This document shows, one piece after another, positions 32,772 to 33,319 of a stretch of 64,000 bases of DNA (position 1 is its first letter; every line of letters begins with the position of its first letter). The DNA is taken from positions 1 through 64,000 of the IMG/VR virus record IMGVR_UViG_3300044957_000763, one strand, 5' to 3'. Both the position numbers and the translations under genes were made by a program. The notes under the pieces are model-generated. The model was not told the DNA's origin and did not search any database. It saw only the letters and a program-made list of their open reading frames with translations.

Positions 32772-32858
32772 TGGTGGGGGCCGTGGGATTCGAACCCACT
32801 CAGGCAAATGCCAACAGTTTTACAGACTGGCCCAGCTCTCCTACTCTGGCGCACCCCC
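32772..32858 (-). tRNA. tRNA-Tyr(GTA), first of pair, long variable arm
   Basis: GGGGGTG/GGCCCCC acceptor (G7:G66 mismatch), A73-CCA; CAGT-CTGTAAA-ACTG; GGCA-TT-TGCC variable arm; GTGGG-TTCGAAT-CCCAC. Confidence 0.85.
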
Positions 32859-32885
32859 GGTTGTATAGTTATAGTCACTTTCCAT
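32841..32885 (-). CDS. Mini-ORF MESDYNYTTGGAPE* (Tyr-codon leader), stops inside the D loop of tRNA-Tyr
   Basis: ATG GAA AGT GAC TAT AAC TAT ACA ACC GGG GGT GCG CCA GAG TAG, preceded by purine-rich GAAGAGAGAAAGAAA. Confidence 0.6.
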   Translation of the reverse strand: MESDYNYTTGGAPE

Positions 32886-32931
32886 TTTCTTTCTCTCTTC
32901 TCTTACACGTCGATACAAACTGTCTGCGCCA

Positions 32932-33007
32932 GGGGTGACCAAAGGAACTCGAATCCTCAATCTTCTGGGCCACAACCAGACGCTTTAACCGATTAAGCTA
33001 TGGCCAC
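32932..33007 (-). tRNA. tRNA-His(GTG), second of pair (canonical arms; no genomic G-1; 3' end CCT)
   Basis: GTGGCCA/TGGTCAC acceptor, C73; GCTT-AATCGGTTA-AAGC D arm; TCTGG-TTGTGGC-CCAGA; T loop TTCGAGT. Confidence 0.9.
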
Positions 33008-33142
33008 ACCTCGCGCGGTGTTCAAAACTTGGGGCGACCGAGGGGTATCGAGCCCCCTAGTGATTTGGTTCACAGCCAAACCCCCTCGCCTTCTGGGTCC
33101 GACCGCCATGTTATTCAGTTGTGTATGATGATGGTCGTCCAT
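32993..33142 (-). CDS. Mini-ORF MDDHHHTQLNN... (49 aa; His-codon leader) reading through the first tRNA-His and stopping in the D arm of the second
   Basis: AGGAAAAGAACA-ATG GAC GAC CAT CAT CAT ACA CAA CTG AAT AAC; it is the tail end of track ORF 32993..33241. Confidence 0.6.
   Translation of the reverse strand: MDDHHHTQLNNMAVGPRRRGGLAVNQITRGLDTPRSPQVLNTARGVAIA
33030..33107 (-). tRNA. tRNA-His(GTG), first of pair, atypical D/T arms, G-1:C73 encoded
   Basis: G-GCGGTCG/CGGTCGC-C-CCA; TTTGG-CTGTGAA-CCAAA; T loop CTCGATA rather than TTCRANY; no U8. Confidence 0.8.
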
Positions 33143-33166
33143 TGTTCTTTTCCTAACTACAAAATT

Positions 33167-33240
33167 TGGCTGGCACGGGTGGATTCGAACCACCATCTCC
33201 AGGGTAACAGCCTGGAATTCTACCATTGAAATACATGCCA
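33167..33240 (-). tRNA. tRNA-Asn(GTT), second of pair, canonical
   Basis: TGGCATG/CGTGCCA (U1-A72), G73, CCA; CCAGG-CTGTTAC-CCTGG; GGTGG-TTCGAAT-CCACC. Confidence 0.92.
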
Positions 33241-33243
33241 CTA

Positions 33244-33319
33244 TGGAGGCCCGCCTGGGTTCTGACCCCAGCCCTTACCGTTTAACAGACGGCCGCAACT
33301 ACCAGCTTGCTCACGAGCC
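33244..33319 (-). tRNA. tRNA-Asn(GTT), first of pair, atypical
   Basis: GGCTCGT/GCGGGCC, T73, CCA; GCCGT-CTGTTAA-ACGGT; G8 and G14 instead of U8/A14; T loop GTCAGAA. Confidence 0.75.

Follow-up and report, generated by a model that had tools for sequence, protein, structure and literature searches.

Several phage genomes carry spare copies of host tRNAs, and the locus described here raises the question of why a phage would keep two tRNA genes of the same anticodon side by side when some of them depart from the canonical tRNA core. In order to address this question, we analyzed a window of 64,000 nucleotides (positions 1 to 64,000 of IMG/VR record IMGVR_UViG_3300044957_000763) from a 479-kb lake-water jumbo phage, and all positions below refer to this window unless stated otherwise. 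Three same-anticodon tRNA pairs, Asn, His and Tyr, lie on the minus strand. The initial annotation described the first tRNA of each pair as structurally atypical, regarded simple decay as unlikely, and proposed that the odd copies are nuclease decoys, regulatory tRNA-like elements coupled to neighboring mini-ORFs, or variants that avoid modification-dependent recognition through U8 or T54. The base-level observation was confirmed by our examination, while the interpretation was supported only in part, as described below. The six genes are as follows.

33244 to 33319, minus strand: Asn-1, anticodon GTT, with G8, A9, G14, C15:G48, T-loop GTCAGAA (G54, G58), T73 and an encoded CCA.
33167 to 33240, minus strand: Asn-2, canonical, with U1:A72, U8, A14, T-loop TTCGAAT, G73 and CCA.
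33030 to 33107, minus strand: His-1, anticodon GTG, with G-1:C73, G8, A9, G14, T-loop CTCGATA (C54, A58) and an encoded CCA.
32932 to 33007, minus strand: His-2, with canonical arms, T at position -1, C73 and the tail CCT.
32772 to 32858, minus strand: Tyr-1, anticodon GTA, with C8, G9, A14, G7.G66 and C27.U43 mismatches, a long variable arm, A73 and CCA.
32660 to 32745, minus strand: Tyr-2, anticodon GTA, with C8, T9, A14, G37, a G49.A65 mismatch, A73 and CCA.

When we scored these genes with the Rfam tRNA model (RF00005, gathering score 29 bits), Asn-2 and His-2 reached 64.5 and 64.1 bits, respectively, while His-1 and Tyr-1 scored 32.1 and 31.0 bits and Asn-1 and Tyr-2 scored 26.7 and 23.2 bits. 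ARAGORN found Asn-1 only at a lowered threshold and did not call His-1. All six genes nevertheless form a cloverleaf with a 7-bp acceptor stem, D, anticodon and T arms, and a 7-nt anticodon loop with U33, and all six contain GG in the D-loop, TC at positions 55-56 and the G53:C61 pair, so that the elbow contacts of G18 G19 with U55 C56 are kept. The U8:A14 and T54:A58 reverse-Hoogsteen tertiary pairs, on the other hand, are both absent from Asn-1 and His-1, and U8:A14 is absent from both Tyr genes.

The description in the initial annotation needs some refinement. First, the rule that the first copy of each pair is atypical holds for Asn and His, but both Tyr genes deviate and the second scores lower. 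Second, the C27.U43 mismatch of Tyr-1 had not been mentioned, and Tyr-2 lies outside the region 32772-33319 to which the observation was assigned. Third, His-2 is canonical in shape but has no G-1, ends in CCCT and thus has no encoded CCA, indicating that the odd His-1 is the copy with the full His identity set. Finally, the deviation is more than expected by chance. Among 67 tRNA-like genes in this genome only 3 lack T54, and all three have GUN anticodons, namely Asn-1, His-1 and a second Asp gene (Asp-b) at genome positions 213896-213824 (Fisher p=0.0012). Seventeen of the 67 genes lack T8, comprising 6 of 8 GUN tRNAs against 11 of 59 others (p=0.0025).

We then examined whether the odd genes are drifting, non-functional duplicates. 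Their low covariance scores and the private mismatches in Tyr-1 (G7.G66, C27.U43) and Tyr-2 (G49.A65) would be in line with this view. Unconstrained drift among homologues had been named beforehand as the outcome that would speak for pseudogenes. BLASTN of the locus against 50,697 phage records found only short matches to single tRNAs and no related array. Scans with exact 17-mers of the T-arms found one relative of Asn-1, in a distantly related phage (G001), and none of His-1, and a metagenome scan with a 22-nt D-arm pattern found nothing. When BLASTN and a covariance model of Asn-1 were run on 42 related viral records, only G001 contained an orthologue, and the others carry ordinary tRNA-Asn. 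The pattern of the Asn anticodon loop plus a GTCAGAA T-loop, however, found real tRNAs in viral and metagenome contigs, and each of Asn-1, His-1 and Tyr-1 was found to belong to a family present in other phage contigs.

In these families the stems show compensatory changes while the odd nucleotides are invariant. In the His-1 family (6 sequences), 92% of cells are paired, 12 of 21 pairs show changes on both sides, and 0 of 500 shuffles were as good; G-1:C73, a purine at position 8 and the T-loop CTCGATA are kept in all members. In the Tyr-1 family (4 sequences, including phages Cece and Francesca and record LR756502), 94.8% of cells are paired, 12 of 24 pairs show changes on both sides, 0 of 500 shuffles were as good, and C8 and G9 are invariant. 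The Asn-1 family has only three members, Asn-1 and its orthologues in G001 and in record L053, with 3 compensatory pairs (15 of 500 shuffles as good), and G8, G14, the T-loop GTCAGAA and T73 are invariant; two orthologues have mismatches at 27:43 and 28:42. As for Tyr-2, relatives with the CTGTAGA loop have T8. Folding of single tRNAs against shuffled sequences was uninformative, with z between -0.2 and -2.

A wastewater relative provided a further comparison. It shows 2 differences in 105 nt over Asn-1 and 1 in 137 nt over His-2 plus the 3' part of His-1 (about 98-99% identity), but 217 differences in 1771 nt over the stretch 31088-32858 (about 88%), which holds most of the downstream Rsr gene plus a Y RNA-like gene and both Tyr genes, indicating purifying selection. 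The relative also has a 299-nt insertion at 32898-32907. In addition, the two members of each pair are only 56-66% identical, so they are not recent duplicates. Based on these observations, the odd copies are not simple decay, and the pseudogene reading is largely refuted by the homologues and remains very improbable.

In order to see whether the substituted positions covary, we tabulated the 54:58 pair among 215 unique phage tRNAs called at the default threshold of ARAGORN. The pair was TA in 202, GG in 5, AT in 4, AA in 2, CA in 1 and TG in 1. When the Asn-1 family and Asp-b, which are found only at lowered thresholds, were added, G54 came with G58 in 9 of 9 cases. A54 mostly came with T58. 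These results suggest swaps that keep the shape of the reverse-Hoogsteen pair. At position 8:14, U:A becomes G:G in Asn-1 and His-1, A:U or G:A in other members of the His family, and C:A or C:C in the Tyr-1 family. The variants appear to be restricted to phages, since the pattern that found the GTCAGAA-loop tRNA-Asn in viral and metagenome contigs gave 9 hits in 185,579 cellular genomes, none of which is a tRNA.

Of the three functions proposed initially, avoidance of recognition through U8 or T54 fits best, because the changed positions are exactly the two U:A reverse-Hoogsteen pairs, 8:14 and 54:58. A T-loop nuclease with a corresponding requirement has been reported: Cash cuts the T-loop 5' of U55 and needs U54 and U55, and whether phage tRNAs are targeted is stated to be open (PMC13462974). 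No specific nuclease or host is known for this phage, so evasion is conjecture.

The decoy reading, in which non-chargeable, tRNA-shaped RNAs soak up host anticodon nucleases or other tRNA-binding defence proteins and so protect the canonical partner, seems unlikely. The anticodon loops are intact and host-like (CUGUUAA, CUGUGAA and CUGUAAA), the covariance scores are low and the variant lies next to a canonical partner. However, the families conserve acceptor-stem pairing through compensatory changes, G-1:C73 in all six His sequences, A73 in the Tyr family, and an encoded CCA in all three Asn-1 sequences, His-1, the record L122 and Tyr-1, none of which a sponge for an anticodon nuclease would need, and for His the canonical partner is the copy that lacks G-1 and CCA. 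The invariant T73 keeps the decoy idea alive for the Asn-1 family alone. G73 is the discriminator element of AsnRS in E. coli and is present in Asn-2, and therefore charging of the Asn-1 family could be poor.

We also considered that the two members of a pair serve different hosts or different charging and modification machineries, with no link to defence. The phage encodes a LysRS-like protein beside its Lys tRNAs and a 266-aa HisRS-like catalytic core, G001 carries three different tRNA-Asn bodies in a row, and the members of each pair have low identity and come from different families. On the contrary, no AsnRS or TyrRS that could be an orthogonal partner was found in the phage, which also counts against the reading of the odd genes as working tRNAs, the HisRS-like ORF scores below the curated cut-off and lacks an anticodon-binding domain, and the GTCAGAA-loop tRNA-Asn does not copy a host tRNA, as it was not seen in any of the cellular genomes. 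This reading is thus doubtful. A link to queuosine was examined as well, since Asn, His, Tyr and Asp are the Q-tRNAs, but the phage has no TGT and its only QueC match is weak (28.6 bits against a cut-off of 150.3) and lies inside a 634-aa ORF.

We next examined how the six genes are arranged. They form one operon, and its further elements, together with the Y RNA-like gene and Rsr that follow the tRNA genes, are listed here.

33623 to 33651, minus strand: sigma-70-type promoter, TTGACA-17-TATAAT.
33470 to 33583, minus strand: leader ORF MRFSLNNHNGNARLTYQVNTAVHNYPNMVRANWGYQA, with the Shine-Dalgarno sequence AAGGA upstream.
33487 to 33499, minus strand: candidate antiterminator segment GGUUCGGGCUAAC, which mimics the 3' arm of the terminator.
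33411 to 33448, minus strand: intrinsic terminator, a 14-bp stem followed by a T-run.
33367 to 33390, minus strand: mini-ORF 1, MEDNDNN, with Shine-Dalgarno GAGGAAAAG.
33319 to 33351, minus strand: hairpin between mini-ORF 1 and Asn-1, the last base of which is G1 of Asn-1; no T-run follows, so it is not a terminator.
33107 to 33142, minus strand: 5' part of mini-ORF 2, MDDHHHTQLNNM, the frame of which runs on through His-1 to a stop at 32993.
32841 to 32885, minus strand: mini-ORF 3, MESDYNYTTGGAPE, which overlaps the first 18 nt of Tyr-1.
32284 to 32394, minus strand: Y RNA-like (YrlA-like) gene.
30572 to 32194, minus strand: Rsr (Ro60-like RNA-binding protein).

The promoter matches the consensus at 12 of 12 positions, and similarity to the wastewater relative stops at 33639. 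In the leader ORF, 13 of 37 residues are Asn, His or Tyr (binomial p=1.3e-4), and none of 2203 ATG ORFs of 25-50 aa in the genome reaches that fraction. The leader RNA folds at -84 kcal/mol against -52.7 for shuffles (z=-7.2). When the transcript was folded truncated before the 3' arm of the terminator, with ribosome masks, the candidate antiterminator segment paired with the 5' arm of the terminator while the ribosome A-site was at codons 1-25, and it was covered from codon 27 to the stop. By contrast, equilibrium folding of the full leader with ribosome masks always kept the terminator, so the proposed switch rests on a kinetic argument. The distant relative G001 shows the same layout, with an Asn-run leader and terminator before three tRNA-Asn genes, and truncated folds gave the expected switch there as well. 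In the genome under study, a QQQQQ leader lies before three tRNA-Gln genes, whereas no Asp-rich leader lies before the second Asp tRNA.

The three mini-ORFs are real and cognate-rich, with 3 Asn in 6 residues of mini-ORF 1 (p=0.0025) and three consecutive His codons in mini-ORF 2 (p=0.001), and they belong to the leader-peptide control layer of the whole operon. Mini-ORFs 2 and 3 read into His-1 and Tyr-1, which raises the possibility that the first tRNA of each pair is mainly a cis-regulatory structure, such that translation into it or ribosome stalling before it decides processing of the downstream tRNA. However, the same tRNA families occur without mini-ORFs. Four His-1 relatives lie in tRNA arrays and a fifth close upstream of one, with no cognate-rich mini-ORF found before them, and the L053 orthologue of Asn-1 stands alone after a terminator, also without a mini-ORF. 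Moreover, mini-ORF 1 stops 47 nt before Asn-1, and the odd positions (8, 14, 54 and 58) belong to the tertiary core and are not sites that would meet a ribosome or a terminator. Coupling to the mini-ORFs is therefore not supported as the reason for the odd features, and we consider it very unlikely.

Downstream of the tRNA genes, the Y RNA-like gene scored 40.4 bits with Rfam RF02553, below the gathering score of 69, but its position directly before Rsr supports the assignment, and the same position is seen in two other records, L002 and L003. Rsr matched NCBIfam NF041674 at 499.5 bits (E=9e-150), below the curated equivalog cut-off of 900. Rsr with a tRNA-like Y RNA gene directly upstream occurs in bacteria and many actinophages, and 377 phage records carry Rsr. 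Here and in L003, tRNA genes lie directly upstream on the same strand, while in L002 they lie downstream of Rsr. The whole block is an insertion between genes that are adjacent in G001. For the neighboring ORFs 33698-34174 and 34184-34519, searches of NCBIfam and PHROGs found no function.

Based on these observations, we suggest that the odd genes are more likely than not working, structurally hardened spare phage tRNAs expressed on demand. In this view, they belong to phage-specific variant families that keep a normal cloverleaf, the elbow contacts, the anticodon loop, the discriminator base and the CCA end, and the tRNA body would still work in translation but would no longer present the uridines that host enzymes use, as ThiI acts on U8, TrmA acts on U54, and T-loop nucleases need U54 and U55. 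Since each variant is paired with a second tRNA of the same anticodon, the phage carries several different bodies per codon family. Ribosomes that stall on Asn, His or Tyr codons of the leader would leave the antiterminator segment free to pair with the 5' arm of the terminator, and transcription would read into the tRNA genes, while smooth translation would cover that segment and transcription would terminate. The tRNAs would thus be made when charged Asn, His or Tyr tRNA is short, for example after a host tRNA nuclease has acted or when phage codon demand is high. Here, we need to consider that the sequence features, the conservation of the families, the covariation and the anatomy of the operon were demonstrated by our analysis, whereas transcription, processing, charging, use on the ribosome, evasion of nucleases or modification, and the switching itself are inferred. 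No evidence of transcription, processing or aminoacylation was obtained, since contigs of DNA and RNA libraries cannot show RNA ends or charging, and the RNA-library contigs may be DNA carry-over and come from a relative.

A bolder and more tentative possibility is that the locus is an on-demand tRNA replacement circuit. The leader peptide would sense the loss of charged GUN-anticodon tRNAs, for instance after a host tRNA nuclease fires, and switch on an operon supplying several differently built tRNA bodies per anticodon, some with G:G-substituted tertiary pairs that T-loop or core-directed nucleases and U-specific modification enzymes cannot use. The operon may also carry the Y RNA-like gene and Ro for RNA quality control.

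We compared the locus with related systems. Phage tRNAs are known to counter host tRNA-degrading defences, such as T5 tRNA-Tyr against retron-Eco7 PtuAB, T1 and T7 tRNA-Lys against PrrC, and anticodon-loop variants against VapC, colicin D and colicin E5 (PMC11555353, PMC10264068). These are likewise spare phage copies of host isoacceptors with sequence changes proposed to make the tRNA insensitive to the host enzyme, and Tyr, His, Asn and Asp are the colicin E5 target set. In the present locus, however, the changes lie in the tertiary core rather than the anticodon loop, each anticodon has two or three different bodies, and expression appears conditional through a leader-peptide attenuator rather than driven by a strong constitutive promoter. 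Leader-peptide attenuators such as trpL, hisL, pheL and the pheST leader share the promoter, the short ORF enriched in cognate codons and the intrinsic terminator, and their alternative antiterminator and terminator hairpins have a counterpart here that is predicted only from the truncated-transcript folds. Here the controlled genes are tRNA genes followed by a Y RNA-like gene and Rsr instead of biosynthetic or synthetase genes, the leader would sense three amino acids at once, and three further mini-ORFs lie inside the operon; we found no report of such control of tRNA genes in the literature searched. In eukaryotic initiator tRNA, in which an A54-A58 purine-purine pair is tolerated (PMC7912444), and in the cell-wall tRNA-Gly isoacceptors of Staphylococcus (PMC7826273), position 54 is also not U while U55, C56 and the elbow are kept, and the changed T-arm marks a tRNA for a special role or for exclusion from a standard partner. 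The phage variants, for which no special role has been shown, keep strong G:C-rich T-stems and also change 8:14, and the G54:G58 and C54:A58 combinations were not found described in the papers searched.

Phage tRNAs have recently been recognized as counter-measures against defence systems that destroy tRNA, and the escapes described so far are changes in the anticodon loop or simple over-supply. Our data point to a second route, in which the tRNA core is rebuilt so that U8 and U54 disappear while the fold is kept. G54:G58 and G8:G14 would be natural test cases for what the T-loop and the core can tolerate, and they would also be ready-made substrates for asking whether T-loop nucleases such as Cash spare phage tRNAs. 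The attenuator would be the first case that we could find of tRNA genes controlled by translation of a cognate-codon leader, and it gives a directly testable link between tRNA depletion and a phage response.

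The 64-kb stretch is the first part of a 478,840-bp virus record with direct terminal repeats, and the same sequence is found in lake-water metagenomes. ARAGORN detected 63 tRNA genes and a tmRNA (144131-144485) in the genome, and many of the tRNA genes are neighbors with the same anticodon. Suppressor-type tRNAs with the anticodons CTA and TCA were found at genome positions 157728-157803 and 233368-233442. In addition, a 266-aa ORF at genome 260004-260804 on the minus strand matches only the catalytic core of HisRS (163 bits, below the cut-off), and a LysRS-like ORF (382 bits) at genome 169008-170267 on the plus strand lies beside the Lys tRNA genes.

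In order to verify the tRNA features described in the initial annotation, we examined the six genes base by base. All of them lie on the minus strand, and in transcription order they are as follows.

33319-33244, minus strand, Asn-1
33240-33167, minus strand, Asn-2
33107-33030 (counting G-1), minus strand, His-1
33007-32932, minus strand, His-2
32858-32772, minus strand, Tyr-1
32745-32660, minus strand, Tyr-2, outside the interval 32772-33319 to which the annotation had been assigned

The observation held, since every base named in the initial annotation is present in the sequence. Asn-1 has G8, G14, T-loop GTCAGAA, T73 and CCA, and His-1 has G-1:C73, G8, G14, T-loop CTCGATA and CCA. Tyr-1 has C8 and a G7.G66 mismatch, and Tyr-2 has C8. 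The standard programs also indicate that these genes are unusual. ARAGORN at its default threshold reported only Asn-2, His-2 and Tyr-1, a lowered threshold was required for Asn-1 and Tyr-2, and His-1 was never reported.

Scores of the six genes on the Rfam tRNA model, in bits (gathering score 29)
Asn-2: 64.5
His-2: 64.1
His-1: 32.1
Tyr-1: 31.0
Asn-1: 26.7
Tyr-2: 23.2

Two corrections are required to the initial annotation, which had described the first tRNA of each pair as the atypical one. First, both Tyr genes deviate, and the second one shows the lower score. Second, His-2 has canonical arms but has T at position -1 and ends with CCCT, so that His-1 is the copy with the full histidine identity set and an encoded CCA.

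When we parsed 67 tRNA-like genes of the genome, the deviation was found to be patterned and not random. Seventeen of these genes lack T8, while only three lack T54, namely Asn-1, His-1 and a second tRNA-Asp at genome 213896-213824 on the minus strand, which has G8 and T-loop GTCAGTA. All three have GUN anticodons (Fisher p=0.0012), and six of the eight GUN tRNAs lack U8, compared with 11 of the 59 others (p=0.0025). Another deviant tRNA-Asp gene, at genome 207043-207123 on the minus strand, is 81 nt long with G8 G9 G14 and scores 20.8 bits. With these two Asp genes, every GUN-anticodon family in the phage has a variant-core member.

We then examined homologues, since unconstrained drift among them had been set beforehand as the outcome that would speak against the annotation, and the result was the opposite. 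Asn-1 has orthologues in G001, a 177.7-kb viral contig (IMGVR_UViG_3300049830_000285) with about 30-78% protein identity to this phage, and in L053, a small metagenome contig. All three sequences keep G8 A9, G14, C15 with G48, GTCAGAA, T73 and CCA, and their stems carry three compensatory pairs (3:70, 31:39 and 51:63). His-1 belongs to a family with five further members in unrelated viral contigs, in which G-1:C73, a purine at position 8, A9, the loop CTCGATA and the anticodon loop are invariant. In this family 92% of cells pair, 12 of 21 pairs changed on both sides, and no shuffle out of 500 does as well. In four members the 8:14 pair is A:T, the mirror image of U:A. Tyr-1 groups with tRNA-Tyr of Microbacterium phage Cece, Rhodococcus phage Francesca and a 642-kb uncultured phage, with invariant C8 and G9 and with 12 of 24 pairs changed on both sides, while the G7.G66 and C27.U43 mismatches are private to the copy described here. 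Tyr-2 resembles a common phage tRNA-Tyr type with a CTGTAGA loop, although those tRNAs have T8. The members of each pair are only 56-66% identical to each other, indicating that they are not recent duplicates. Based on these homologues, decay of the odd copies is excluded. It should be also considered that the odd copies might be nuclease decoys, as the initial annotation had offered, but a pure decoy would not need conserved acceptor pairing, G-1:C73 or CCA. The invariant T73 of the Asn-1 family, however, leaves some room for the decoy idea in that family.

To examine the tertiary pairs, we took 215 unique tRNAs from this genome, G001 and the fetched phage arrays, a sample that is biased by the way in which the loci were found. 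The 54:58 pair is T:A in 202 of these tRNAs, G:G in 5, A:T in 4, A:A in 2, C:A in 1 and T:G in 1. When the Asn-1 family and the second Asp were added, G54 was accompanied by G58 in nine of nine cases. Other phage arrays (L053 641-713 and 1187-1259, L116 1780-1854, and L125 5119-5274) hold tRNAs with A54 and T58 in the loops ATCGTTA, ATCGTAA and ATCGTCA, the mirror image of T54:A58. U54:A58 and U8:A14 are both trans Watson-Crick/Hoogsteen pairs, and a purine-purine A54-A58 pair is tolerated in eukaryotic initiator tRNA (PMC7912444). The simplest reading is that the shape of the pair is kept while the uridine is removed, although the geometric equivalence of G:G is our inference.

The pattern of the Asn anticodon loop plus a GTCAGAA T-loop found real tRNAs in viral and metagenome contigs, including otherwise canonical tRNA-Asn genes. 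On the contrary, when one genome for each of 185,579 bacterial and archaeal species was searched with this pattern, it gave nine hits, none of which is a tRNA.

Contigs from two wastewater metatranscriptome libraries carry a relative of the locus. The stretch with Rsr, the Y RNA-like gene and the Tyr genes differs at 217 of 1771 positions, while the region 32907-33043 (His-2 and the 3' part of His-1) differs at 1 of 137 and the region 33244-33348 (Asn-1 and the hairpin before it) differs at 2 of 105. The region 33244-33639 differs at 15 of 396 positions, and similarity ends at 33639, at the promoter. Here, we need to consider that these sequences are contigs and may derive from DNA in the libraries. 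They show conservation and not transcription. In this relative, 299 nt replace 8 nt at 32898-32907, between His-2 and the Tyr mini-ORF, and one contig has a joint that skips almost exactly Asn-1 (33249-33318).

Upstream of the six genes, the region 33405-33651 on the minus strand has the layout of a complete attenuator, composed of the following elements.

33651-33623, minus strand, perfect sigma-70 promoter, TTGACA-17-TATAAT
33583-33470, minus strand, 37-codon leader ORF with a Shine-Dalgarno sequence, MRFSLNNHNGNARLTYQVNTAVHNYPNMVRANWGYQA*
33499-33487, minus strand, candidate antiterminator segment, GGUUCGGGCUAAC
33448-33417, minus strand, strong intrinsic terminator

Thirteen of the 37 residues of the leader are Asn, His or Tyr (binomial p=1.3e-4), and none of 2203 comparable ORFs in the genome is as rich. 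The leader RNA is far more structured than shuffles, with -84 against -52.7 kcal/mol (z=-7.2). When we folded the transcript as it exists before the 3' arm of the terminator is made, with a ribosome footprint masked, the 5' arm of the terminator paired with GGUUCGGGCUAAC as long as the ribosome was at codons 1-25, and from codon 27 to the stop this segment was covered. At equilibrium the terminator always forms, which is expected of a kinetic switch but leaves the mechanism unproven. G001 shows the same design with unrelated sequence (minus strand about 177455-176997; locus L023 17456-16998). It has a TTGACA-17-TACAAT promoter and the leader MLYTLSNNNNANTSPATGRSAE*, a segment of which mimics the 3' arm of the terminator, and a terminator with a T-run follows, and then three different tRNA-Asn genes, the middle one being of the Asn-1 type. 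Masked folding of G001 gave the same switch depending on ribosome position. Elsewhere in this genome (256780-256990, minus strand), a leader ORF MSKTYTVRTSSPKASTLGILAVRQQQQQRTRSVA* with a Shine-Dalgarno sequence, ending with ...RQQQQQRTRSVA*, lies behind a TGGTATAAT element about 100 nt before three tRNA-Gln genes, and no clear T-run terminator was seen there.

Inside the operon, each pair is preceded by a mini-ORF with a Shine-Dalgarno sequence, namely MEDNDNN* before the Asn pair, MDDHHH..., which reads into His-1, and MESDYNY..., which ends inside Tyr-1. The initial annotation had also considered that the odd copies may be regulatory tRNA-like elements coupled to these mini-ORFs, but a role as a cis element of the mini-ORFs does not explain the odd bases, and the same tRNA families occur without mini-ORFs. 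Downstream of the tRNA genes, a Y RNA-like gene (32284-32394, minus strand; 40 bits on the YrlA model, sub-threshold) lies directly before an Rsr/Ro60 gene (30572-32194, minus strand), and the same arrangement is seen in two other viral contigs, L002 and L003. The block 30572-34519, comprising Rsr, the Y RNA-like gene, the six tRNAs and two small unknown ORFs, is an insertion between two genes that are adjacent in G001.

Deviant phage tRNAs and phage tRNAs as counter-defence have been known. In literature searches restricted to open-access papers and preprints, however, we did not find a description of the paired replacement of both reverse-Hoogsteen U:A pairs, of the G54:G58 T-loop as a recurrent phage-only feature, or of a leader-peptide attenuator in front of tRNA genes.

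The interpretation in the initial annotation was partly supported. The odd copies are not simple decay, and among its proposals the one that they are variants avoiding recognition that depends on U8 or T54 fits best. The defence angle is made plausible by two points from the literature. First, phage tRNAs rescue infection from tRNA-degrading systems (PMC11555353, PMC10264068). Second, a CRISPR-associated Schlafen nuclease cuts the T-loop 5' of U55 and is blocked by changing U54 or U55, and its authors state that the fate of phage tRNAs is unknown (PMC13462974). With no host, nuclease or RNA product known for this phage, the link with defence is conjecture. While the base-level features, their conservation and compensatory changes among homologues and the arrangement of the operon were observed directly in the sequences, the production and function of these tRNAs and the switching of the operon are inferred. 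We favor the reading that the odd genes are working tRNAs whose core has been rebuilt without U8 and U54, that the phage keeps several bodies per anticodon, and that the operon would be switched on when charged Asn, His or Tyr tRNA is scarce.
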